The position numbers and the translations under genes were made by a program. This document shows positions 9,801 to 56,900 of a stretch of DNA of 64,000 nucleotides, piece by piece. The DNA is taken from NCBI RefSeq assembly GCF_001194135.2, contig NC_068982.1:115323065-115387064 (forward strand). The letters run 5' to 3'. Under the pieces are notes generated by a model. The model made no database searches and was not told the DNA's origin. It saw only the letters and a list, made by a program, of their open reading frames with translations. This DNA is from Octopus bimaculoides. Taxonomy: Eukaryota. Position 1 is the stretch's first letter. Each line of letters starts with the position of its first letter.

Positions 9801-12800
9801 GAGTAAGAGAGTTTTCAAAATTTGTATTTGACACTGTATGGTGCTCTTAAAATACAGTGGAATTTATTATAAATTAATTGCACAAATAAATTTTTAATAA
9901 ATAAACTTCATCACTTTGCAGCAGGGACAGAGAGGAAATAGAACTACCGTAGTAAAATTAACTGAAACTATCAGTAGCCTAGTGATGGCCTCTGTTAACT
10001 TCAATTATACTGAACCAGTGTTGTACATTAGTTGAGAGCTCTTTTTTGCAAAATAAAACAAAACATTGGGAGGACTTTTTTTTTTTTTTTGTTACTCTTG
10101 GGAATCTCCCTCTCTCAGATCTATCAACATACAACTTTCTTTTTGTCCTTAAAAACTGAAAGGTGTTACTAATGTTATTAGAAATACGTTACTTAAATAT
10201 TTTGCTCAATATTTAAGATATCAAAGCGAATGCAAGGATAACTTACACAAACACTCATTAATATCCAATCTATATTAATATCTAACAAATTATAATTTGG
10301 CATGTGTATCCTACAAATAAACACTGGAGAAGAGAGAAAAGCTACTAATAATATTCTAAAAGAAAATTTTAAAAATTGAACCCACAGCCAGAATAATAGC
10401 AAATAATTTAAAATTACATTGAAAATATAAGTAGTAAGGATGTGTATGTATGTATATATATATATATTTGCATGTATATAAATAAAAAGTAAATAATAAA
10501 TAAAATGGTAGAATGAGTCATTTTCAGTTGAAAATCAAAAATTCCATGTGCTTCAAATCTGAACAAAATTTTGGTGAAATAAATTAGGCGATTCCCAATG
10601 TGAGTCAATAAAATGCAATAAAGTTTTTCATGTGACAGTTGTATCAAGGTACAGGTTTTGAATGCAAGTGCATATTATTATTGTATGATTGAGAATGACA
10701 GGCGGTGACTGTAAAAGTCAAACTACACTATATTACATCACCCAACTATTGGAACACTTAAGTTTGCATGAAACTATTTAAGGTAAATATAATCCTCCAG
10801 TTTCAAATAATGTTCATGATAGAATGAAAAATATCCTGTGAAACAACATAAGGATATTTGATTTTAATGGAGATTGATTATATACAAAAGTTGTACAATT
10901 AAACTAAACCCGAGGTTCCATTAATTTATGAAAGTTTAATACTTATTTATTGAGATTAATAATGGGAAGTGAAGGAAACTTAAGGAAATACAGCCTTATC
11001 TTTTTAATGTATGGGTATTAACAACTGTCACATGGTCAACTAAAGAGAATCCACATAAATGAATGTAAGTAAAACTCTGAATAAGGAATTCAGGCTTTTA
11101 TTTCTGAGTTTGATACAAAAATAGTCATGCTGAGAATAACTAAAGCTGATATCAGTGGATGCCAAAATAACCAATGTGTGGAAAGAAGAGAAAGAAAATT
11201 ACTCATTCTTTATACAGGGGTGGACTTTAAAGTGAGACAAACTTAATGAAATTATATTGTCTAAAATCGATTTAAGTAATTCCAAATCATTTAAAAATAA
11301 TATTTAAACATTTTCTCTCTTCCACCATTGATTTTTTTTTTAAAATTTAAATTAAATGCTTTTGAATATTTACAATATTCTAATAAATTCTAGCAAGGGT
11401 TTTTTAAATATACTAATTTTTAACTTTTAAAAATATTCCTATCACAGAAAGATCATTGTCCCATGATAATAGCTAAGCAAAATTTCACAGGTCAACTAAT
11501 TTTTAAAAAAATCCAAATAAATAACTTTGCTATACACAATAACATCACAAGTTTATCAAGCATGTTTTTAATATCCCCCTTTCCATCTCATTTCTCAAAA
11601 AGTTTTATGTCATGCGACAACTAGCTCCATTTTTGTTTAAATAAATCTACGAAATTTTCTTGAAAACAATATTTAAACTGTTCGATGTCAACTAAGTATA
11701 CACAGCCAGATTCAGATAAAGGCTGTCATTGTCGACATGAAGGAATACAAAATCTAAGTTATAAAAATATTTAGAATACTTGGTACTCACCATGTAGCGA
11801 GACACTAATGTCATTGCAAACAGGGAATAGTTTACATTGTCTGAAACAGGGCACTCAATTCCAGAAACATAATTCATGCATGTTAAACAAATATATACTG
11901 AATTCGAATACAATATGGTGTATAATGCCCACCAATTACTTAAGCATGAGATACACTAGTGTTTGTTGTAAATATCCAATGATATGGCTTACACAAATGC
12001 AATTAAAGCCAAAACAGCACATGAGAGGAGTGATAAGATTGCAACCCTGCATCATGCAAAATAATTGGTATAAACAATAAAAAAACAAAACAAAACAAAA
12101 CAAAAAAAAAACAGTAAATACTAGCTTAATTATCAAAAATATTTAAATTATAAAGAATATCCAGTTTTATTCTAGATATTTGCACCATGTATATTAAACA
12201 GAGCCTACAACATAAACCTCCAATGCTAAAACTAGGGAGATGAAATCATATTCATGTTTTGGGAAAAAAAAAAAAAAAAATTACTGTTACTACAGATAAA
12301 TTGGAAAAAGGATATTTAGATTAACTAGAGCAATATACAGTTGACAAAAACAGCATATAATAAAATAATTTAATATTAAAAAAATTTTTAAATGCATATC
12401 AAATGTCTGCAATAATCCATCTAATTGATAGTATCTAGACATTCAAGTAAATTACATTTATATTATTCAAACCACACATGAAATGCGTACTACAGAATTA
12501 CAATTTACCCTTAAAATTTTTTAAGCAATCACCTATATATTTAAAAAATATTTTAATGTTAAACAATCTATATAGCAAATAAATATATGTAGACAATAAA
12601 ATATATCAAAGTTAGAGAAACCTTAGAAACATACCAAGATATTTGTGGTTGTGGTTATAGCATCAAGGTTCCAATGGGTTCTTTTAATCCAAGCTAAGCA
12701 TGGCTCCACTAGATAGTGAACAGCAGCCCAAACCCACTGGTTGATGTGCTCTAGATACACCAGCAAAAGGGACCAAGGCATCTTCTACTGTTTAGTAGGA

Positions 12801-14309
12801 GTGGGACCATTAAAAACAATTATTACAATGGCTTTTTACATTAACCACTAAACAATTGAGAGGAATACATGTCACATGTGCAACATTTATATTATTCAAT
12901 TTTCAAAACGTTTTACTAAAATAATCACCTAACAAAACAAAAACAACATAGCTGTAAGAATGATAGATATATTGTAATCTCAAACCATGATTGACAGGGG
13001 TATAAAAATCAGACATTTTCTAGTGAAATAAGAAATAACATCAAAAACAAACCAGACAGTAGCAATACAAACATCCTAATCACTTAAACTCTGCAGATGA
13101 ATGAATAAATAAGTCAAATAGTTCAGCAACCAATATCAAACATTGCATATTCAAGTAAAAATAAATATAATAATGCAAGTCTAAAGAGAAAGTGATCAAT
13201 ATTAAAACATCCAAATAATTGAAAATTAGCATGAAATAAAAAGTGGAAAGTTGTAAAGGAAGAGCTAAGCTAATAGCAGTTGCATATATCTTAAACTGTT
13301 TAAATGAGGGGGTAAGAAAAAAAAAAAAAAAAAAAAGTGGGCAGAAAACAATTCCTTCCACTTCTATTCCAATACTTTTTAAATTTTTGGATTAGCATAA
13401 TCATGATAGAACAAATAAGATCGGAATAACTCAAAGAGCAGTAATATTTCAGTAGGTAGTAATAATTCAAGTTCCAATCTAAAAAATGCTCACCTAATAA
13501 TAACATCTAATTTCATATAGACTCAAAAGTCAATGTGCACCGCATTGATTTTTTTTCTTTTTCTAAAAGTAATTTGGGTCAAAATGAAGTCAATAAATGA
13601 ACAACGTAAGACATTTTGACATGCAAGAGAAAGAATATACAGCATATAACACACCTTGGTTTTGCTGATAATTATTCATGAATTATGGAATACTATTCCA
13701 ATTCACAAAGACTCAATTGATTTTAAAATTCATCAGATCCTAGCAAAAACAGAACTTATCAGATCTTCAAATCAAATATTTTTTTTTGCTTGACTAAGTT
13801 TAAAAAAAGAAAAAAAGAAAAAGAAAAAAAAAGAAAAAGAACCAATAATTTTATAAAACATGTTCATATACACACACACATTATGTTCATACACACACAC
13901 ACAAAATAAAATAAACAAAAATAAAAATTAAACAGTTAATAGAGACCAGGAAATAAATATATATTGCACATACTTAAATATATAAAATAGATATACATTC
14001 AAAACAGTTCTTTTAGTGATTCATATAGTTACAGTTACTGTAATCTTAAATAAGTCAGATACTTAGTTTGTCACTTTTTTTGCAAGAAAAAAGTAATTAA
14101 CAATGCAGTCGGTAATTGCTTTACCACACAATACTGTATATACATGCAATTAAACAAACCTGTAATAGTTACCAAGAACACAAAGCCACCTCTAACTGCA
14201 CCACACCTGACTAAATAAAGGAGCCATCAAACCATATCTCAAAATCAGGCTAATGTAACCTAACGTATATACACAATACTATCCAAATTAATAATTATTG
14301 CTAGCATAG

Positions 14310-14492
14310 GCATAAGGCCTGCATTGAGGGGGGAGAGGGAGGTGACTATATTCATCTCAACAGTTCACGGGTACTTTATCAATCCCAAAAGGATAAAAGG
14401 CAAAATTAACTGGCAGTATTTGAGCTCAGAATTTAAGGAGTTGAAAGAAATACTAGATGATATTTTGTCCAACGTTGTAACTATTTAACAAA
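14310..14492 (-). mobile_element. Decayed SINE fragment
   Basis: ggcataaggcctgc...aaaggataaaaggcaaa...tttgagctcagaa pattern; shares segments with 57477-57626. Confidence 0.5.
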
Positions 14493-17174
14493 TCCACTGC
14501 CCTAATAAGCCTTTTTTTCCCAAATTCTTGATGCCATGTACAGCTCTTTTGCTAATTATTTTTTAGTAGCCAATAACTATATTACAATTTAAGCACACAC
14601 AAATGCATAATTAAATAATCTTCCTTCTTAACATAAGTCACCTAAGTGACAACTGTTTTCATCTATGAAACATGTAAGGCAGGTGTAAGTTTTTTCTCAT
14701 GTGCAAATCCAAACTAAAAATGACAAAACAATATATTTTACTAAACTATATTGGGAGAGATTAATCAACGTTAAAGAACCTTCAAAGGTCTACAAACAGC
14801 AGGATAACAAAAAATACAGCAAGCGTTAAGCTACAAAAACTCTTACACTAAGTTCTAGTAGAATTTCAAGATACTGTCATCCTATTCATAAAAATTTAGC
14901 TGTCAACGAGTGTGAAGAAGATATATATTTTAGAATCATATGTAGATAAATGGGAAAAGAGAGAGAAAGCACAGTCCTTAAATACACTTGCTGAAAGAAA
15001 CTTTTTAATACTGTCTGATTTAGTATAGTATTATTGCACATACGAGCTCAGTCATCAAATTGTGTAGAGCCTTAATATCTTGAATAATAGAAATTGAGAA
15101 GTAAGTGAATAGAAAATACGTTCAAAATTGATCAACAAACAAGCAATTAACTGTTTTTGATAACTCAAATAATTTTATGCTTAACTTCATATCATACCAA
15201 AAAACGTAACTTGTAATAAATTTTGAGGAAGTACTTTTAGCGCATACAAATAAAAGACTAAATTGTCAATATTTCAATATACATGTAATTAAAATGGCAT
15301 ATGAAAACACTGAAATAAGATTTTTGGCAAAGAATACTTTTCAATAGTACAAAGGTTGTTTTTTCTTTTAAAATATAAAGTTCTAACCAAAATATTAAAA
15401 TGTTTAGTGTGATACTTTTGAATACTATAACTTTCTGTGTAATATACTCACCCCACAGACAACGATGATTAACAATTTGTAGAAATTATACTGGAAAACT
15501 AATAACTGTTACAACATTAGAGTTGAGTCAAATGGATTAATGTTGCAACTGAAGATATCTGACGATACAAATAAAAGGAAAATGAGGCAAAGCTTAAAGT
15601 AACTGACACCAAAGAGATGACAAATCTAAAAGTTAAAGCATTTCTGTAACTCATTTAAGTGATAAAAGTTTGACAAGCATAACCATCAATTATATATGGT
15701 TTCTGTCACACTGCCATTTATGTAACTGAATTATGACAACAGTATGAAATACAGTTAAATGGAGCATAAAAAGAGATTAAAACAGGTATGAAAATAAAAA
15801 TGTCAAGCCATATATATATACATTATACATATGTTTTATATATATGCAATATATATGTAGAGAGAGGTAGAGAGAAAACTTAAAAGCATATGGTACAATA
15901 TAAAAAAAAAACTGTTATGACAAATGGTACTTTACATTAATATGCACAATATACATGGAATTAAAACAGCACTTTCAAAAATGAAATATCTCAAAAACAT
16001 AATGAAAAGGTTTACGTAACTAACTAATAATAGAAACAGAAACATCCAGAACTTATATTCGTTAAAGGAGAAAAGAATAAAAATTTTGTAGCAGACAGCC
16101 ACCTTCAAAATAAATGAATAAATAAAGAGAAAAAAATGCAAGTCACATGATTCACACACACCCTTTAAGTGAAAAACAACTGTTCGCTATATCCCTGGTA
16201 ACAAATGAATTGTGATATTATGAGTATGGCAATTAGTTCTGAATGAAGTTGACGTAAAGGGGTTAGACCTCGCTATCATATCTACAAGCTTTCTCTTACA
16301 TACACATACGCACATTATTTCACATGACCGACAATGATGTTGTAGAAACCCCATCTTGGAATTAGAAAAATATATAAACTATCAAGATGCATTTGATTTC
16401 AATTAAAACATGTGCTAGAAATTACATGTTCTATGTTACAAAGACTGTACTTCATAGAAGACATAAATACGATGGTTCATTAAGATTCAAACATCTAAAC
16501 ATTATGCTGTAAAATGTGCTACCTGAAAATAACTTACCTGACATGAGGGCAGGTTAACAGGAACTTAACACAAACACAAGTCAATACATGAAGAAACTTT
16601 ATTGCAAATCATATTTCCCCAATGATCTTACCTTCAATCAGCTGCTATCCTTTCAACATTGGCTGAAAAGCAGCACTGTATATGTTGCTAATCACACAAG
16701 GCCATGTTGTATGAAAAAATTCAAGATCTCTGATGAATATTTTACATGTACAAAAATGAAACTTATTCACAATGGTCACTGATTAATGACACTAACAAAC
16801 TATGTTAAAAATACTCATGGCTCTTAAATTACTAGATCCACAAGTTACAATGTTATACTGATGCCTCTCTGCTAACAGATGTGGAAGGGCAGGAGAGCAA
16901 GAACATATAATGATTAGGAAGATTCCACTTTCATGAAACAGCATGACTGAAGTTGGACAACACTCACGGAAGCTGCAAAATGATGGTACTCTATTATAAG
17001 TATGCTCCAATTGTGAACATAGTTTAGAATGTGCTGCAATTCCCTCCCAAACTGTTTGAGTATCTAAAGTGAAATGAAATTGCACCTCAGCACATGGAAT
17101 GTTCAAACAAATCTATAGGAAATCCAGTCCAATTTGAAACCTATAACGATAATACATGCACATACACACAGTTT

Positions 17175-17216
<42 letters not shown>

Positions 17217-17232
17217 TATACATATATATATA
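17175..17232. repeat. (TA)n microsatellite
   Basis: Direct reading. Confidence 0.95.
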
Positions 17233-17432
17233 AAACTCAGACAATACACCAATCAAAAGTATGTACATGAGTGTATACATGTACACACACACACACATAC
17301 ATGCAAACACACCCTGTTATTCAACATAGGACCACTAAAGCATGTCATAGAATCGTGGAAGTAGCAATACAACTTTAGGCTGCTTCATCAAGAAATCCAG
17401 TAGAGTCGATACATTTTTTTCCTTCAGGGATC

Positions 17433-17823
17433 CTGTGTGAAATAAACAAAAGCAAACTATTTTTGCATGGTTCAAATACGGTTCTAGTCATTTAAGAAAA
17501 CTTAGAAAGATTGTTGTAAATTAAAAATGTAAATGTAAAATGGCGAGTGGACATATAGTATAGGAAAGAAACGTCTGATATTCATAGCCATTTGATGCAC
17601 AGCAGATAAGTAACCTGGAATCCAAAAGTCAGAAGGTAACTTTAAAAAAAGATTATCCCCACCCACCTTTAATTTTGGATAAGTCATTACTTTAACAAAA
17701 TATGAAAAATCCATCAAAATGGAAGTTGAGTGATTCAAGAGCATATATATATCCAGGTACCACATAAGTGAAATAAATGTTTAATTTAAGTAATTATGTA
17801 AAATACTCACCATTAATACTTAC
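17433..17823 (-). other. Candidate second 3'UTR intron with two alternative donors (gtaagt at 17823, gtgagt at 17810)
   Basis: ATA|gtaagt and ATG|gtgagt 13 nt apart; acceptor tttgcttttgtttatttcacacag|G with AG at 17433-17434. Confidence 0.45.
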
Positions 17824-18030
17824 TATTCCTTGGAATCAATGATGAATTAGAATGCACCATCCATGTAATTACTTAGTTTAGTTTAAGAGTAATAAACTGT
17901 ACATACAACCATACCCCTTCACCCCTCAATATACCAGAAAGAAATAAGTATTACAGTACAGACTGAAAATTACAGGTTCAAGACAATCAGTCAACAGGAA
18001 GATCACCAGTTATAATGAATTTTTCTCTGG

Positions 18031-18036
18031 TTTATT
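18031..18036 (-). promoter_or_regulatory. Candidate proximal polyadenylation signal (AATAAA)
   Basis: AATAAA on the gene strand followed ~30 nt later by a U/GU-rich stretch (tcttcctgttgactgattgtcttg); further AATAAA at 18598-18603 and 18743-18748. Confidence 0.35.
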
Positions 18037-18945
18037 TTTTCAATCAAAACCAAGTTATAAACAGAAACACAAACAAGTGTGTAGGTTGCAATGCTAACTT
18101 GACAAGTACATAAACTTTGGTTAGTTCACATTTACTTAAAAGATTTTTGGCATGTATGATTACACATTTGTTATTTGTACTAAGATAAATACAAGGAAAC
18201 TAGACACCCTTACAAAAATGTGCTAAATTTCTTTTTAATATTAATGTAGTTCTTAGTAAATTAAATACTTTAAACTTTAATTTGGTTTTATAAATCAAAT
18301 GATATGTCTTCATAAATCCTAAGCAATATCTTTTAAGTTGCAATATGTTAGGCAAAGAAGACTATTCAATGAGTAATGGAGTGAGAATTACAAATATCTT
18401 AACACAATATATATTTGTTGAGCAATATTACACACAAAAACGTTTTTCTACAATTTAGGATTAAACTTAACATTGCATTAACTTACACTATGTTAACTAC
18501 TATAAATTTTTAAATGAAAATGACATAGACTGGATACAATCCAACAGGTTTAATAATACAAAAATGCTGAAACTATAAATAATGAACTACAATTACTTTT
18601 ATTTGTTTTTTAGCCACCACGAGTAGAGCAGTATAAAGTGTATTCTAACATTAAATGGTTTCATTATCCTACAAACTCTGATATAATTATCATAATATAA
18701 GTATTTTGATGCCAACTCTGTGCAGAGAGGTCAGGTGTTTAGTTTATTTTCGAAGAAAAATGCAATTAGCAAAATTCATTGATGTTACTCTATTATACAA
18801 TACTATATGTGTAATTAATAAAGTCTGTAGCAATATTCACCAGCATATTACATCACTAAATTCTTCCAAATTCTTGGTTAGTCTCAAAATTAATTGAAAA
18901 GGTGCCTCTTATTGAAACTATGAAAAATACAAATGTTAATCAATT

Positions 18946-18950
<5 letters not shown>

Positions 18951-18980
<30 letters not shown>
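18951..18980. repeat. (TG)n microsatellite within the probable 3'UTR
   Basis: Direct reading. Confidence 0.9.
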
Positions 18981-18985
<5 letters not shown>

Positions 18986-19070
18986 ATATATGTAAGGTAA
19001 AATTGTACAATATAAAAAAAAATTTAGGGACTAATTGGGATGGTGCATTCTTCTCCATTGGATCTGGAAG

Positions 19071-19132
19071 CTAGGAAAAGGGAGACATAGAAAGAGAATG
19101 GAAAGATGAGAGGAAAAACAGTTGACATTTAC
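19071..19132 (-). other. Candidate 62-nt 3'UTR intron (alternative AG at 19064-19065 gives 69 nt)
   Basis: TAG|gtaaat donor 43 nt after the stop, then an AG-free, almost pure pyrimidine tract ending cttttcctag. Confidence 0.55.
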
Positions 19133-19175
19133 CTAGTTGCTGCCATAGGTTAAAATGAAATGAATCAGAACATCA

Positions 19176-19342
19176 TCACTGGGGTTGAGGTTGTTGATTG
19201 GCCTGACCTTGGCTTCCCACTTGACCTTGTTGTTGTGCTGCTTGTTGTAATATCATATTTGCATGATAGTGCATCCCTTGTTGACGATAGTATTCTGCCC
19301 AAGCAGCACTGTAATCAGGTTGGCCAGTTTGGGGGTTGATAG
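19176..19342 (-). CDS. FUBP1-like: FUBP last coding exon: [23 protein letters not shown]...QPQPQ* (second Tyr-rich box; TGA followed by a second TGA)
   Basis: ORF 19176-19409; ttttccttag acceptor; [12 protein letters not shown] is the DUF1897/Psi A-B-box-type motif. Confidence 0.96.
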
Positions 19343-22300
19343 CTAAGGAAAAAAAGCCACTCAATTCAAAAAACAGTGCAGAAAAATTCTGAATCCACAA
19401 TGTGATCATTTAAATAACAAATTAATACTATATGGAAAAAATTTTTGGAAGAGTAATTTTATATAATTATTTTATAGAAAAAAATTTACTTAATAATAAT
19501 AATAATAATAAAACTATCACCTTTACACAAAACAGGTAAAAATTATTTTACAGTAAATTTATAAAAATATTAAAACATCTCAAGCAAATCTGCCATAAAT
19601 TGATTTAAATGATATGATTTCTGCTTCACAGAATTAATTGTTCCTGGGATATTTGTATTTAAAAAGATCATAGACTTTTTAGAAATTACATATGAACTTC
19701 ATATATAGTAACAGTAACTAAATTTGAAAGACTTCCAAGTGCAGGAAATAATAATAGTGCAAGAAATGGAATTAGAGGCTGCAATTTCTCAATGTAAACT
19801 CAGCATACAACTACAATGAAACAATGATTTCCATGAAGAGAATGCGGTGAAAATTTTACAAATATTTTTCTTCCAAAATTTTCATAAACCAAAAACTGCC
19901 AGTCATCCTTATGCTTCAAAACACATTTACTTGCTTTTTCTAGTTTAAGTGTTCATATAGTCCATGCTGGTTGACAAAAAGCATGGCACTTCACATTTAC
20001 TGTGTCCTGATGAAATAGTCATGATATACAAGATTAATATGTTATTTATTGCTGTACCACCTTGATCAGTATTTATACTCATGTAATGTTTAACCCCAAA
20101 GACATTATGATAAGCTAATTTTAATGTGTGTTTTAAGCAAAATGCACGAGTGGCTCAATGTCCAGAGTCTTATCACTATCAACACTTTCAAGGAAAAATA
20201 ATAAAAAAGGAAACATGAATGCAGCAGCAGTTCAAGCTGTCGTCATCACCTTGTCTACCTTACAACCGCATGGCAAAATAGGTGATGTAGCTGTAACAGT
20301 AAATCTCTAACAGAAGACTGAAGTTGGCAGAGAGGAATGTGGACTATTTTGGAATGGGGGAGAAAAAATAATTACTAAGCATATGTGTGAGTGAGCCTTC
20401 ACTTTGCACTGCAGTATATGACAGCTTAAACAATGCATGAGAACCCAAAGAAACATCAAAACTGGTTCCACTGTGAGAATGCATCCCTCTTGTCTCACTC
20501 TAACAACAATGCAGTAAAGCCCCCAACACTTGTTCAAACTGTGCTAAAACTGAGAAATCAAGAGATTGTAATCATACATTTTACAAGATCAAGTAGGAAT
20601 GATGGGAAAACAAAGCCAACAGGTTGCAAATGTCAGACAGATGTTATACATGGACCTCCAATGAATCAACAATGTTTTGGGAAAAGGAGAAATACTTGAG
20701 TACTTTGCATAGTATTTCCATCGAAATGCTCAATGCACCAAAGAATGTCAACAGGGAAATTCTGGAAAAATATAACACATTAAGACGATCCAAGTACAGA
20801 AGAGGTGTTAGTCTTAGTAAAGAACCAGGAATAAATGAGATCCCAGCAGAAGCATGGGAAAATGGAGGAGCTTACCAGTTTCTTGATTCTAGCATCAGTT
20901 GGTGAAAATATTCCACAGAACTGGAGGGATTTTACCATTGCCTCCACAATTATGAAAGCTGACGGGAATCACTACAGAAACTTAAGGAACTTCTTTACTT
21001 GCTCTTGCAGGACTGTTGCTCAACAGTCTGAGAGAGAAAAAAATCATGAAAGTTCTGAAACTCAATGTGAGTCTAAAAGAGGAAGAAACACCATGAATAT
21101 GGTATTTGGTCCATGACAAATGTGAAATAATGCAAGACACTTTATGTGATCTCCCTGTTATTTCACAAAGACATTCAAAATAGTAATTCAGTTGGGCTTA
21201 AAGCTTCAGAAAGTTCACTCGAACAACTAAGTACCTACACACTGGTATGAAAGCTTGGGTTATGCTACCACCAACATTAATCTTATCTTATCCATCCACA
21301 TACAGAGTAGACCTCATACTCACATCCTTATGATGTTGCACTTTGAAGCTAAGACTAAGAACATATGTTAGTGAGAGATATGTTTTAGAAGAACGCTCTA
21401 ATCTTCATTGTATGGAGAGCCTGGAGAATGTTGCTGGTAGTACAGCCACAAAATTCCACTTTACTATTAACATCCAGAAGTCCAACACAATCAACCAAGC
21501 CTTAATGCCAACAAAGTTACATAATCAGATCCCATCATCATCATTGAGCAGCAGAAGCCAGTAGAAGGTTAACCACTTTACCAATTTAGCAAGTACACAA
21601 TGTGACATCAAAGGATGAACAGCTTCATATTGGTTGAGAGTTGACAAATGAACAAGCAAAAGTTCAGAGAAATATACAGATTAGAGGAAAGTTGCAAAGA
21701 CATTTTCCCCGCCCACACATGAATATTAAATGCAAATTCCAAGCTTCCAAAACCAAGTTTATGCTGTAAATATAAACCAATCTAAATTTTTAATTTTGCT
21801 GTTTGAAGGTCAATAGAAACATATATTTCAAATCTATTACATGTTCAAAAATGAACCTCAATATTCAGATTGTGAATACAAACACTCTAAAACATTAAAA
21901 TATTTCCAATTATCACTCACCAGGTTGCTGCTGTTGTTGGGGTTGCTGTGCAGCCTGCTGCTGCGTCTGCTGGGGTGCAACTTGTTGCTGAGGCTGTTGC
22001 TGTTGGGGTTGTTGTTGTTGGGGCTGCTGTTGAGGTGGCTGCTGTAACTGGGGTTGTTGGGGTGCTCCTGGGCCAGTTGGTTGGCCTGGCTGTTGAGGGG
22101 CTCCTTGGCCTCCTTGCTGGGCCTGGTACTGACCATATTGACCATACTGTGCATAATACTGAGCATAATAAGCAGCCCATGCGGCTGCATTAGCATCTTG
22201 AGCCTGTTTATCTGGAAAAGATACTATATATTGAATGTAAGGTAAGAAGCTTGAATATAAAATCAACTTGAGAATCAGAAGTTATCTAAAAATACAGACT

Positions 22301-53900: not shown

Positions 53901-56900
53901 GCACATCTGTGTCATGTAGTAAATGTAGGACATTTATGTTGTATAATATTTCACAATTAAATGATAATATATTTAGAGTGTTTGAATTTTCAAAGATTTC
54001 AGAATCACTAGGTGGCCTCTGGGACACCCCATAAAATGCTTGGAAAAATAGCTAGCATGGAGCTTGCCTTTTACATGACAAGATTCTTCAAACATATATA
54101 CATGTTTACCTGTGTGCTATACACACTTATGAATTATTGCATTACATTCCCAAAAGGCCTTGCAAAAAGCTTGTATGCATATGTAAATTAACTGATATAT
54201 ATATATATATATATATANNNNNNNNNNNNNNNNNNNNNNNNNNNNNNNNNNNNNNNNNNNNATATATATATGCACAACTTTCATACACACAAAAACAGAT
54301 ATGTATGTACACACATGAATACAAAACGAAATCTGAACTTGTTGCCTCTCATGGGAAAATTGACAAGACTTTGCTGATTGGTGACATACTGTGTATGACA
54401 GAACCATCCAACTAGGTTAGCCAAAACAAATAACACGAGTGTATATATGGCATCATTTTATACATCCATGTCCAAGCTGCCAGAAGTCTACATCACCAGC
54501 TTCTTTGATAGTATCACATCCCTCAAATACAGGTTAGGTTATCTACATCCACCTCCATGTCCCTCAAACTATCAATGCCTTTATCTCTTATGCCCCTACT
54601 GCTCATCTCTCAATTACACCCTACACTTTTCAATCACATTGTTCTACCACCGTGCTGCCAGTGTGACTAACAACGGCACTGCATCTCCTCTTTTCATTGT
54701 ACAGAGTTTCCAGAGTAAATAAGGATGCTACTCCATCTCCCTTACTCACATCAATATACTAGGCACCTGTCGTCCTTGTCACTCTAGCAGTCTTATCTAT
54801 CTTGAGTCACCAGAAGTCTCTTCAACATGATTCACAATAGATATCCTACCTATACAACTCCACTGCCTAATTGCTATAAATATCCATTATTCAGCCTCAC
54901 CATTTATCCACTCCTTGCTGTCCATTCACATGTTCACTCTATTGTGTTTAGTATGGAGACAAAAAGACTTCAGTTTTAAACAATTTGCTCGCTCTGTAAA
55001 TTGGTGTTAGGAAGAGCATCCACAAATCAAGTCATTAAATAAAACTTGTGAATAGGATGTAGTAAACTAGCCCATCATGAAGTTTATCAACACCAGTTCA
55101 ACCCATCCCAGCAAAGAAAGCTGACATAATAAAGTTGTGTATGTGTGAATATGATTTTACATACAAATACACACAAACATCATTTTAATGTCCACTTTCC
55201 CATGCTTGCATAGAGTTCTAGACAAGTTTTCTATGGTTGGATGCCCTTCCCTTTGCCAACTTTTACTCATTTCCAAGTACACAAACATATACTTGCAGAC
55301 AATGACTTTGGGCTGCCCAAGGAGCTATCACCTGAAGCACCACTGAGGTCCTGTGATAGGCAAGTGAACTTTTTAACCACACACGTGGTGTGTATGTGTA
55401 TAGTGATAAAGGGTTTAAGAAATCCAGATGAATATCTCAGCACTCCAAAGAAAGAAAGAAAAAAACGGTCTGAGAGGATGTCAAGTGAAGATGGGTCATT
55501 CTACACAAACTCTAAGTTCAACAAGATTCACCAATCAATTGTGTTAATTGTAAGAGTATAATAACAATCAGACTAAAAAAATTACATTGTTACATAATTT
55601 TATTCAAAGGTTATGATTGCTTTGAATGGCTAGAGGAACTTCAGTAAATGGAAGTTGTAGATAACTAAAATATCAAATTACCTTCTTTGATTTAATATAA
55701 AACTTTCCAATGCTATCATACCCAATGACGAGCATAGCAGAATAGAATTACAAGGGTATCAAGTCACAAAAGTTAGAGTTATAGATCAGAATGGATGAGA
55801 TGTGTTCAGAAGTACTCTTGATGCCCCTTTTTCTTGTAAAACAGTTGCAGATGTATTTAGTTAAGTAAGCCAGTGTATGTGGCATTCACTGACTTGGAGA
55901 AAATCATCAATAGGGTCATATTAGCTGTGATATGGTGGTCACTGAAGAAGTCAGATAAATGGTATGGTAGAGCCATACAGGGATGCTTTAGTCAGTAATG
56001 TACAACAATGAATTTAATTCACCAGGAGACCCCCTCCTATTCACCATGGTCCACAAGGCCATAAAAAAGAACTTTAAGATCAGTTGCCTTCGGTAACAAC
56101 CACATACTGATGACTTCATAGTGGAAAATATAGTAGAATTAGAAAAGGAATACCTGGAATCAAAGGGCCTTATGAAGTTAACATAGCAAAGACCAAAATT
56201 CTAGTTGGCAGGAAAACAGACAAGACTCTACTCCCTTCAGGAAAATAACCCTAATCAATGTGTAGGAAAGGCATAGGCATAGGTAGAAATTCCATATGGT
56301 GTATTCAGTGCAAGTAATGGAGCCAAGAAAAGCAGTGGAATCGGAGAAAGGGTGAGAGAAGAAGACTATGAGGCAGATGTGAAGAAGCAACAAATACTAT
56401 GAACACCTGGGAAAGATTTTCAGAATGCCCAGGATGTAATAGATAATTTCTATTACATAGGTAATCTAATAAGCAGAGGATGTTCTGGAATAAAAACAGA
56501 AAGGAAAGTTCAGGAAGCTTTTACAAAGGGTCTTTTTCTCTGATGAAATGTACATTGTATATGAACACATTATGTAGTTGTGGAGATGGGAATGCAGAAA
56601 GGAACAGAATACTCTGTAGGATGTGCAATGTCAGTGTGTATTTAAGTAGTGAAGGATGATAAAGATGAGACAAAGGACTGAGATGATAGTCAATTTGCTG
56701 AGCCTAAGAAGACCCATCCAGCACAGTAAAAGTGAGACCCTAAAAGTATTATGTTTATACACTTACTGTCCCCTGTTCCTGCTCCCAATCTGTCCCTACC
56801 AAGCCCTCACTACTTCTCAGCTTCTAGCATCCATTTCTCTGTCAGTCTTCTAACTAGCTGCTGTAATCATGAGAGCAGAATTTGCACAGAATTCATTCCT

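Follow-up and report, generated by a model that had tools for sequence, protein, structure and literature searches.

A Stop-Proximal 3'UTR Intron with Twin 5' Splice Sites and a Predicted Long-Range RNA Duplex in the FUBP Gene of Octopus bimaculoides

Introduction

Introns that lie in the 3'UTR (3' untranslated region), a short distance past the stop codon, are known from genes for RNA-binding proteins, and the present analysis concerns such an intron in the far upstream element-binding protein (FUBP) gene of Octopus bimaculoides. The gene is contained in a window of 64,000 nucleotides (nt) from NCBI RefSeq assembly GCF_001194135.2 (contig NC_068982.1, positions 115,323,065 to 115,387,064 of the forward strand); coordinates given without a contig name are those of this window, all features discussed are on its minus strand, and a slash within a motif marks the splice site. 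The intron combines a weak 5' splice site close to the stop codon (the first donor) with two tandem consensus 5' splice sites far downstream (the twin donors), which a predicted long-range RNA duplex would bring into the vicinity of the first donor. FUBP1, KHSRP and PSI are proteins with a general role in regulating both splicing and the decay of mRNA.

The 3'UTR intron of TARDBP is normally retained, and excess protein triggers its splicing together with a change of poly(A) site. FUBP shares with TARDBP a 3'UTR intron that is tied to mRNA fate in the gene of an RNA-binding protein; the default state of TARDBP, however, is retention with competing poly(A) sites, whereas the default of FUBP, as seen in cuttlefish transcript contigs, is the spliced form, and the AATAAA hexamers inside its intron are not conserved. 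In the PSI-U1 silencer of the Drosophila P-element third intron, exonic pseudo-5' splice sites are found within about 30 nt of the real donor. The likeness is that of tandem U1-type sites near a regulated weak donor, the FUBP gene being the orthologue of PSI; in FUBP, unlike in the P element, the linear sequence puts 1309 nt between the donor and the putative U1 sites downstream of it, which come near to it only through the predicted duplex.

By analogy, the closest counterpart of the FUBP module is not TARDBP and is instead the pair hnRNP D (AUF1) and hnRNP DL, which autoregulate via 3'UTR poison exons located in an ultraconserved element (Kemmerer et al. 2018, PMC5824352). As in FUBP, the stop codon of an RNA-binding-protein gene stands just upstream of a 3'UTR intron with internal alternative splice sites (predicted ones in FUBP), the use of which would put a junction far past the stop, and sequence conservation around the element is extreme. 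The difference is that hnRNP D/DL employ a short cassette exon with a good acceptor of its own, whereas FUBP has tandem 5' splice sites as putative alternative sites, along with a predicted long-range duplex. A catalogue of 2020 (PMC7310861) counts the introns of zebrafish hnrnpd and human HNRNPD as stop-proximal, and the class as outlined there resembles the FUBP case in its location less than 50 nt past the stop, its conserved position and its enrichment in genes of RNA-binding proteins. That catalogue covers vertebrates, whereas the FUBP intron occurs in molluscs and other invertebrates and holds putative internal regulatory elements; FUBP1, FUBP3 and KHSRP are absent from the part of its human 3'UTR-intron table that was covered, which is weak evidence that canonical transcripts of vertebrates lack the intron.

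Exons that are looped out and RNA bridges that act over long range (Kalmykova et al. 2021, PMC8052449; ATE1, PMC7797038) likewise involve conserved complementary boxes hundreds of nt apart in an intron and near splice sites, with a stability comparable to that of the FUBP duplex (-32 to -35 kcal/mol), and looped-out exons are skipped more often (PMC8052449). Unlike these bridges, the FUBP duplex belongs to an intron of the 3'UTR, where it connects a weak donor with a tandem decoy donor, and its topology is kept from cephalopods to oysters while the arms are wholly different. A literature search found no published description of FUBP, KHSRP or PSI levels being controlled through a 3'UTR intron.

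The FUBP Gene and the Loci Compared

The FUBP gene on the minus strand of the window was delimited from the listing of open reading frames (ORFs), with tblastn for the exons, and encodes four KH domains and a FUBP_C motif. Its last six coding exons join in frame and end at the TGA at 19178-19176; the last of them (19176..19342), which carries the FUBP_C motif, is 80.5% identical in nucleotide sequence to that of the cuttlefish. A protein search with a near-full-length masked query gave far upstream element-binding protein 1 of Octopus as the best match of the spliced model, and the C-terminus of this model is identical to that of O. bimaculoides XP_014784355, in agreement with the gene identity (FUBP/Psi) given in the first-pass annotation of the window. 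The motifs listed in that annotation were all recovered, on the minus strand and at the same positions, when recomputed.

For comparison, octopus loci of O. vulgaris (L002), O. sinensis (L003) and O. bimaculoides (L004) were used together with a locus of the cuttlefish Acanthosepion pharaonis (L010), four Crassostrea gigas-type contigs (including L013), C. virginica, one oyster transcript contig (L012), a further molluscan contig (L001) and a caenogastropod (L017). Over 10 kb the window is 100% identical to the O. bimaculoides locus (61109-71109 in locus coordinates), and O. vulgaris and O. sinensis reach ~93.5% identity with it in the 10 kb that follow the last exon. A second decapodiform contig (L011) stops short of the 3' end of the gene, and its downstream ORF has an internal stop.

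The Stop-Proximal Intron and Its Direct Splice

From the stop codon, a 3'UTR stub of 43 nt (19133..19175), in which TTTTAACCyATGGCAGCAA is kept in the cuttlefish and which is present in the transcript contigs L005-L009, leads to the first donor, CTAG/GTAAAT, with its GT at 19132. The distal acceptor TTTATTTCACACAG/ ends at 17433, and the two sites, both conserved, delimit an intron of 1700 nt (17433..19132). Five Logan RNA-seq contigs (L005-L009) from five runs code for P0292, a FUBP protein of the cuttlefish, and all five are spliced past the stop (...CAGTGA TGACTGATTAGCTTAATTTTAACCCATGGCAGCAATAAG/GATCCCTGAAGACAAAATGTATCGACTC...), with the junction reading ...GCAGCAATAAG/GATCCCTGAAG... In the A. 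pharaonis genome the left half of this junction is followed by GTAAAT, while the right half is found 1150 nt downstream, preceded by ...TTTATTTCATGCAG; the GT-AG intron thereby defined (L010 31283-32432, 1150 nt) is absent from the transcripts. The octopus positions 19133/19132 and 17433/17432 are orthologous to the two cuttlefish junction sites, and the exon flanks are conserved too, so that the alignment to other cephalopod loci which the first-pass annotation had proposed as a check speaks for both donor 19132 and acceptor 17433.

By this orthology with the cuttlefish transcripts, the octopus intron, which is located wholly past the stop, is removed in the mRNA, and the direct 19132-to-17433 splice is the default product and not one option among three. 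A direct splice with its sole junction 43 nt past the stop had been put forward as the last of three outcomes, the others being cleavage at internal AATAAA hexamers and inclusion of a middle segment; it is the one whose orthologous junction is carried by five cuttlefish contigs. As the terminating ribosome would remove an exon-junction complex (EJC) deposited 43 nt past the stop, this mRNA would be productive, and by the vertebrate 50-55 nt rule it should escape EJC-dependent nonsense-mediated decay (NMD). The NMD-immune geometry ascribed to the junction agrees with the measured distance, and all donors compared are close to the stop.

Exact look-ups of isoform X2, of a 104-residue ORF that lies within the distal exon and of ten short ORFs, taken from the intron or its middle segment in octopus and cuttlefish, matched no contig; some of the ten began with GTG or TTG and could not match, and empty look-ups of this kind in the contig collection say nothing about inclusion isoforms. 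Rfam covariance models gave just sub-threshold matches on microsatellites across 10500-19500, and the idea of a host intron for a small nucleolar RNA or microRNA was rejected, there being no Rfam match. A microsatellite inside the intron (18950-18995) is (CA)n in O. bimaculoides and (TA)n in O. vulgaris and O. sinensis.

The Donor Next to the Stop Codon in Other Invertebrates

The position of the first donor is preserved well beyond the cephalopods. It is found 12-43 nt past the stop in four molluscan lineages, namely at 43 nt in the octopus, 39 nt in the cuttlefish, 12 nt in oysters (CCAG/GTATGT), 30 nt in the molluscan contig L001 (ATAG/GTAATT) and 41 nt in the caenogastropod (GGAG/GTAAGC). 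In oysters the acceptor, ...CTTTTGTTCATTTATTTCATCTAG/GA, is similar to that of cephalopods. The transcript contig L012 from an oyster breaks off exactly at the donor past the stop, as an assembly-graph branch at a splice site would cause it to do; the junction itself is not in the contig.

A scan of metagenome contigs yielded 80 loci with a FUBP last exon, of which the 44 unique genomic ones were analysed; many of these 44 are interrelated, and their taxa are unassigned. A match to CAG/GTRAGT at no fewer than 7 of 9 positions within 60 nt past the stop was present in 29 of the 44 contigs (66%) vs 15 of 176 control windows (9%), and for a match at 8 or more of the 9 positions the shares were 34% and 0.6%, respectively. 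The strong donors were placed 6-54 nt past the stop. By this survey, donors no more than about 60 nt past the stop are widespread among the FUBP genes of invertebrates, and the apparent constraint on its position supports the relevance of the 50-55 nt rule here.

The Twin Donors

Far inside the intron, the twin donors ATA/GTAAGT (GT at 17823) and ATG/GTGAGT (GT at 17810) are 13 nt apart and form a 19-nt element, GTAAGTATTAATGGTGAGT (17805..17823). Single GTRAGT motifs are not conspicuous in this region (3 in the 1.7 kb intron vs 0.45/kb in the other introns of the gene, which is marginal alone). The pair is of another order: GTRRGT-N7-GTRRGT has one copy in the 64-kb window, both strands counted, vs 0.03 expected, and the tighter form GTRRGTAT-N5-GTRRGT has exactly one copy per locus in nine loci (those of O. 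vulgaris, O. sinensis, O. bimaculoides, the cuttlefish, the four C. gigas-type contigs and C. virginica), each time on the sense strand and inside the post-stop intron. The sequences are GTAAGTATTAATGGTGAGT in Octopus, GTAAGTATTACAGGTGGGT in the cuttlefish, GTAAGTATCACAGGTAAGT in C. gigas and GTAGGTATGGCAGGTAAGT in C. virginica, with the same spacing of 13 nt in cephalopods and oysters.

Both twin sites fit U1 better than the first donor does, since GTAAGTAT and GTGAGTAT can pair at +1 to +8 while GTAAAT is without the G at +5. They are also nearer to the acceptor than the first donor is, from which they are 1309 nt downstream in the linear sequence, and yet they are unused in the cuttlefish mRNA contigs. 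Their deep conservation and uniqueness suggest that they are real U1 sites. If they were used, the junction would fall about 1.29-1.35 kb past the stop.

Two further ideas about this element were tried and rejected. A recursive splice site is not indicated, as the octopus has no AG before the second GT and none of the species has a pyrimidine tract there. A local hairpin in which UUCAUCAUUGA pairs with the second twin donor (17780-17890) and would mask donor 17810 folds with z = -1.8 in the octopus (8 of 200 shuffles) and is not seen in the cuttlefish. The UCAUUG of this local octopus hairpin also extends the long-range duplex described below, and both structures would therefore compete.

The Long-Range Duplex

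In the octopus intron, the inverted repeat of greatest length joins 19058-19038 to 17862-17842 and contains a perfect 14-nt core, AGAATGCACCATCC with GGATGGTGCATTCT. The 5' arm (19038..19060) has its core at 19051-19038, whereas that of the 3' arm (17837..17862) is at 17862-17849; the 3' arm ends 13 nt upstream of the twin donors, and the core is 25 nt from the first GT. The cuttlefish intron, too, has this core, there 13 nt in length, as its longest perfect inverted repeat (L010 31340-31352 and 31867-31879), and the core is identical in the three octopuses and the cuttlefish. RNAduplex gives -32.0 kcal/mol for O. bimaculoides, -31.8 kcal/mol for O. vulgaris and -35.1 kcal/mol for the cuttlefish, with helices of 22-25 bp when the extensions are included. 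A perfect inverted k-mer of equal or greater length arose in 7 of 300 dinucleotide shuffles of the octopus intron and in 4 of 300 of the cuttlefish intron. Outside the core, the arms of octopus and cuttlefish use different sequences and extension registers, and one compensatory pair, A-U to G-C, distinguishes the two; few lineages could be compared.

In C. gigas the best long-range repeat, CAGCAAATCTAGTAGCT with AGCTACTTGATTTGTTG, comprises 17 bp with one mismatch (L013 5798-5814 and 6683-6699). One arm follows the first donor at ~80 nt and the other precedes the twin donors by ~45 nt, which is the cephalopod topology in an unrelated sequence, and both arms are part of blocks for which C. gigas and C. 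virginica show 100% identity. In each of five species the 150 nt after the first donor pair best, among all windows of the intron, with the 100 nt before the twin donors, and shuffled partners equalled that pairing in 1, 0, 0, 6 and 5 of 300 trials, respectively. The looped-out length is 1.2 kb in the octopus, 0.5 kb in the cuttlefish and 0.9 kb in the oyster. On these comparisons the duplex is judged to be real in cephalopods and probable in oysters; as modelled, it would leave no more than roughly 130 nt between the twin donors and the weak first donor. It had no part in the first-pass annotation and is newly described here.

Proximal Acceptors and Internal AATAAA Hexamers

Shortly after the first donor the octopus intron has a 50-nt tract (19120-19071) of 86% pyrimidine that ends in an AG at 19071 and is followed by a second AG at 19064; the whole (19064..19120) is 97% identical in O. 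vulgaris, and its role is uncertain. Use of these AGs would produce a mini-intron of 62 or 69 nt, below the shortest coding introns of FUBP (94-100 nt). The equivalent proximal AGs are 37 and 46 nt from the donor in the cuttlefish, where the second falls inside the predicted duplex, and 31 and 32 nt in oysters. A spacing of 31-46 nt is too short for a conserved splicing event, and the first intron of 62/69 nt that had been suggested for the octopus thus loses its footing; with the mini-intron unconserved, a conserved alternative is more likely to be a choice of 5' splice site than a cassette exon. The claim that inclusion followed by downstream splicing yields an NMD target is accordingly carried by half of its parts, as the twin donors are unique and deeply conserved, whereas the first intron is not conserved and transcripts that use the twin donors were not found. 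Across the species compared, the strong pyrimidine tract is a feature of the octopus lineage, and a cassette-exon mode restricted to Octopus is conceivable.

The three AATAAA hexamers at 18748, 18603 and 18036 (span 18031..18748) are judged incidental. In DNA of 29% GC, single splice-like motifs and AATAAA are common, and the intron density of 2.4/kb vs 1.14/kb in the other introns amounts to 3 hexamers seen with about 1.4 expected. Two of the three are gone in O. vulgaris and O. sinensis, with 18603 surviving, and there is no AATAAA between the first donor and the twin donors in the cuttlefish or in either oyster. By density and conservation the internal hexamers are at chance level, and the proposed short mRNA cleaved at one of them finds no backing.

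Conservation, Distal Exon and 3' End

The constraint on the region is distributed unevenly. Octopus and cuttlefish are 80.5% identical in the last coding exon and 79% in the 43-nt stub past the stop; most of the intron gives no alignment, and the last ~110 nt of the intron together with ~900 nt of the next exon (17540-16521) are again 74% identical. Between O. bimaculoides and O. vulgaris, identity amounts to 86-91% in the coding introns, 92-94% in the middle segment 18900-17824, 97% in the part 17823-17433 and 98-99.6% in the distal region 17000-15000. Judged by these alignments, the middle segment is almost like an ordinary intron, while the acceptor flanks and the region after the twin donors (17433..17804, 97% vs O. 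vulgaris, with the ~110 nt before the acceptor alignable with the cuttlefish) are strongly constrained.

The distal 3'UTR exon probably runs from 17432 to about 16580 (16580..17432), where an AATAAA (16603-16598) and a GU-rich element (16578-16567) form the first conserved poly(A) site, which is part of a block identical in octopus and cuttlefish; longer 3' isoforms are possible. Its first ~120 nt are more conserved between octopus and cuttlefish than the coding exon is (80.5%), and a block of 69 nt (17386-17318) is identical in the two. This block, the conserved acceptor flank and the 97% identity of the 3' part of the intron together give the region the character of an ultraconserved element. 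A structured RNA in the 69-nt block was considered and rejected, as its predicted fold has no advantage over shuffles (z = +1.3 and +0.2); the block is probably a single-stranded binding platform.

Several observations concern the neighbourhood of this exon. The AATAAA at 16603 is flanked by two motifs like 5' splice sites that are kept in the cuttlefish (16521-16635), GAAG/GTAAGATC ~28 nt upstream and CAG/GTAAGTTATTTTCAG/GT ~50 nt downstream, and these may reflect a U1-controlled poly(A) choice or a further 3'UTR intron. The stretch 12700-16560 has one hexamer resembling a poly(A) signal (PAS-like) in 3.9 kb vs about 9 expected from the rate in introns, is 94-98% identical to O. vulgaris and is followed by islands conserved in the cuttlefish at 12713-12598 and 11882-11755; it looks like a long 3'UTR extension selected against premature polyadenylation. 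Octopus (17200-17260) and cuttlefish share a (TA)n run after the conserved start of the distal exon, and it is at this run that the cuttlefish contigs end. The part of the C. gigas intron from the twin donors to the acceptor has a conserved hairpin, CTGGAAGCAA...TTGCTTCCAG (L013 6922-6969), as well as a conserved UGCAUG within GGGTGCAATGCATGTGAGTG (L013 ~6885), a possible Rbfox-type site.

Other features were seen in the coding part of the gene and in the assembly. The Q-rich penultimate coding exon (21921-22226) has tandem acceptors 12 nt apart, giving ...ADPISFPDKQ... vs ...ADPNKQ..., and is skipped entirely in the annotated O. sinensis isoform X5 (XP_029632950.1, ...QQADPTINPQTGQ...). The cuttlefish transcripts L005-L009 and annotated proteins (P0292, P0171) include isoforms without the first KH domain (...AAINDHSGGLPDR...), and the O. 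vulgaris isoform P0290 carries a similar deletion (...VGLNSGGLPDR...). Runs of X in ORF translations at ~26790 and ~54200-54250 point to assembly gaps in the window filled with N.

Proposed Mechanism and Alternative Explanations

The twin U1 sites and the duplex are taken to be functional because they are conserved from cephalopods to oysters, and it is only through this conservation that their function is argued. The reading favoured here, for which the chances are put at about even, is an unproductive-splicing switch similar to that of hnRNP D/DL, operated via alternative 5' splice sites and an RNA bridge. By default, 19132 would be spliced to 17433 to give an NMD-safe mRNA that ends near the conserved poly(A) site at ~16580. 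The twin donors and the duplex would constitute the switch between competing 5' splice sites: splicing of 17823 or 17810 to 17433, or retention of the upstream part of the intron, would leave a junction far downstream and an unproductive mRNA, to be removed by NMD or kept in the nucleus. The ratio of the two outcomes would be set by the duplex and by U1 occupancy. By the general rule that segments which are looped out are skipped (PMC8052449), the productive splice should gain from the duplex, and opening of the duplex or loading of U1 on the twin sites would favour the unproductive one. That a twin-donor isoform is missing from the assemblies would follow from degradation of this RNA. The controller would be the FUBP protein itself, in a homeostatic loop; it is a likely candidate because FUBP/KHSRP/PSI proteins act on splice-site recognition, with PSI and FUBP1 contacting the U1 small nuclear ribonucleoprotein. 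Self-control of this kind is also how many genes for RNA-binding proteins behave, hnRNP D/DL among them (PMC5824352).

A number of points weigh against such a switch and should be considered together. No transcript from any species examined uses the twin donors, the five cuttlefish contigs all showing the direct splice, and splicing in the octopus is read from orthology, no octopus RNA contig having been found. The twin motif was not found within 10 kb in the gastropod locus, which has no alignable island over that distance, nor was it found in the metagenomic contigs. The statistics of the oyster duplex are weaker (5-6 of 300 shuffles), and the arms are conserved within lineages, such that covariation amounts to one compensatory pair and the complete exchange of arm sequence from cephalopods to oysters. 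To our knowledge, the 50-55 nt EJC rule has so far not been demonstrated in molluscs, and self-regulation by FUBP, with putative binding to its own RNA, is argued by analogy.

Among the alternatives, a constitutive intron that involves no switch is a possible, though doubtful, explanation of the same features. The twin sites and the bridge would then secure accurate and efficient removal of an AT-rich intron, with bound U1 keeping cryptic signals from being cleaved and polyadenylated too early (telescripting) and the duplex shortening the effective intron; the direct splice in all five cuttlefish contigs and the 8 PAS-like hexamers in the octopus intron are in line with this, and long-range structure has been proposed to suppress intronic polyadenylation (PMC8052449). 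Against this, the stretch from the first donor to the twin sites has 0 AATAAA and 0-2 ATTAAA in oyster and cuttlefish, and yet both the twin sites and the duplex are kept there. Moreover, the exact spacing of 13 nt across classes exceeds what telescripting needs, and the extreme conservation of the intronic flanks and of the exon start is typical of regulated events. At the other end, the possibility that the motifs arose by chance in an ordinary unspliced 3'UTR can be regarded as already refuted: single GTRAGT, YAG and AATAAA motifs are indeed frequent at 29% GC, but the orthologous transcripts are spliced, the twin motif is kept to oysters with 0.03 copies expected, and the duplex is conserved.

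The full three-way switch of the first-pass annotation, in which AATAAA cleavage, a 1.25-kb cassette exon leading to NMD and the direct splice would be alternatives, now appears improbable. All of its motifs are present, the pyrimidine tract of the octopus lineage stands out by its strength and is 97% conserved from one Octopus species to another, and the AATAAA at 18603 is kept within the genus; against this stand the background density of AATAAA, with two of three hexamers lost in congeners and none in the segment of cuttlefish or oyster, a mini-intron that is shorter than any coding intron of the gene and elsewhere shrinks to 31-46 nt, and a middle segment barely more conserved than ordinary introns. 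It is very improbable that the looped segment yields a stable non-coding product, be it a lariat-derived RNA or a circular RNA formed by back-splicing of the twin donors to the proximal acceptors. The geometry would favour back-splicing, with arms 3-12 nt inside the proximal AGs and 13-25 nt upstream of the twin donors, but the looped sequence is poorly conserved and unalignable to the cuttlefish, whose proximal AGs have no good preceding pyrimidine tract. A bolder form of the unproductive-splicing switch would see in the twin U1 sites and the bridge a molluscan sensor more than 500 million years old, by which FUBP/PSI reads its own concentration and loads U1 on the decoys, diverting splicing away from the NMD-safe junction. 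This is a speculative and on balance unlikely proposal; if true, the pseudo-5'-splice-site mechanism, of which the Drosophila P element is the only known case, would have in this sensor an ancestral form directed at its own gene.

Significance

The FUBP case adds cephalopod-to-bivalve conservation and a structural element to what is known of regulation through 3'UTR introns, with the regulation itself still a proposal drawn from sequence comparison. The parts of the module, namely an intron of the 3'UTR close to the stop, a decoy donor in tandem form and an RNA bridge that keeps its topology while its arm sequences turn over, would exemplify a natural RNA structure that links competing 5' splice sites. 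The location of the donor about 6-58 nt from the stop across many invertebrates is comparative evidence for a constraint by the "50-nt rule" outside vertebrates. EJC-dependent NMD and unproductive splicing have barely been studied in lophotrochozoans, and a module kept from oysters to octopuses would offer a directly testable case of homeostatic control in these animals.

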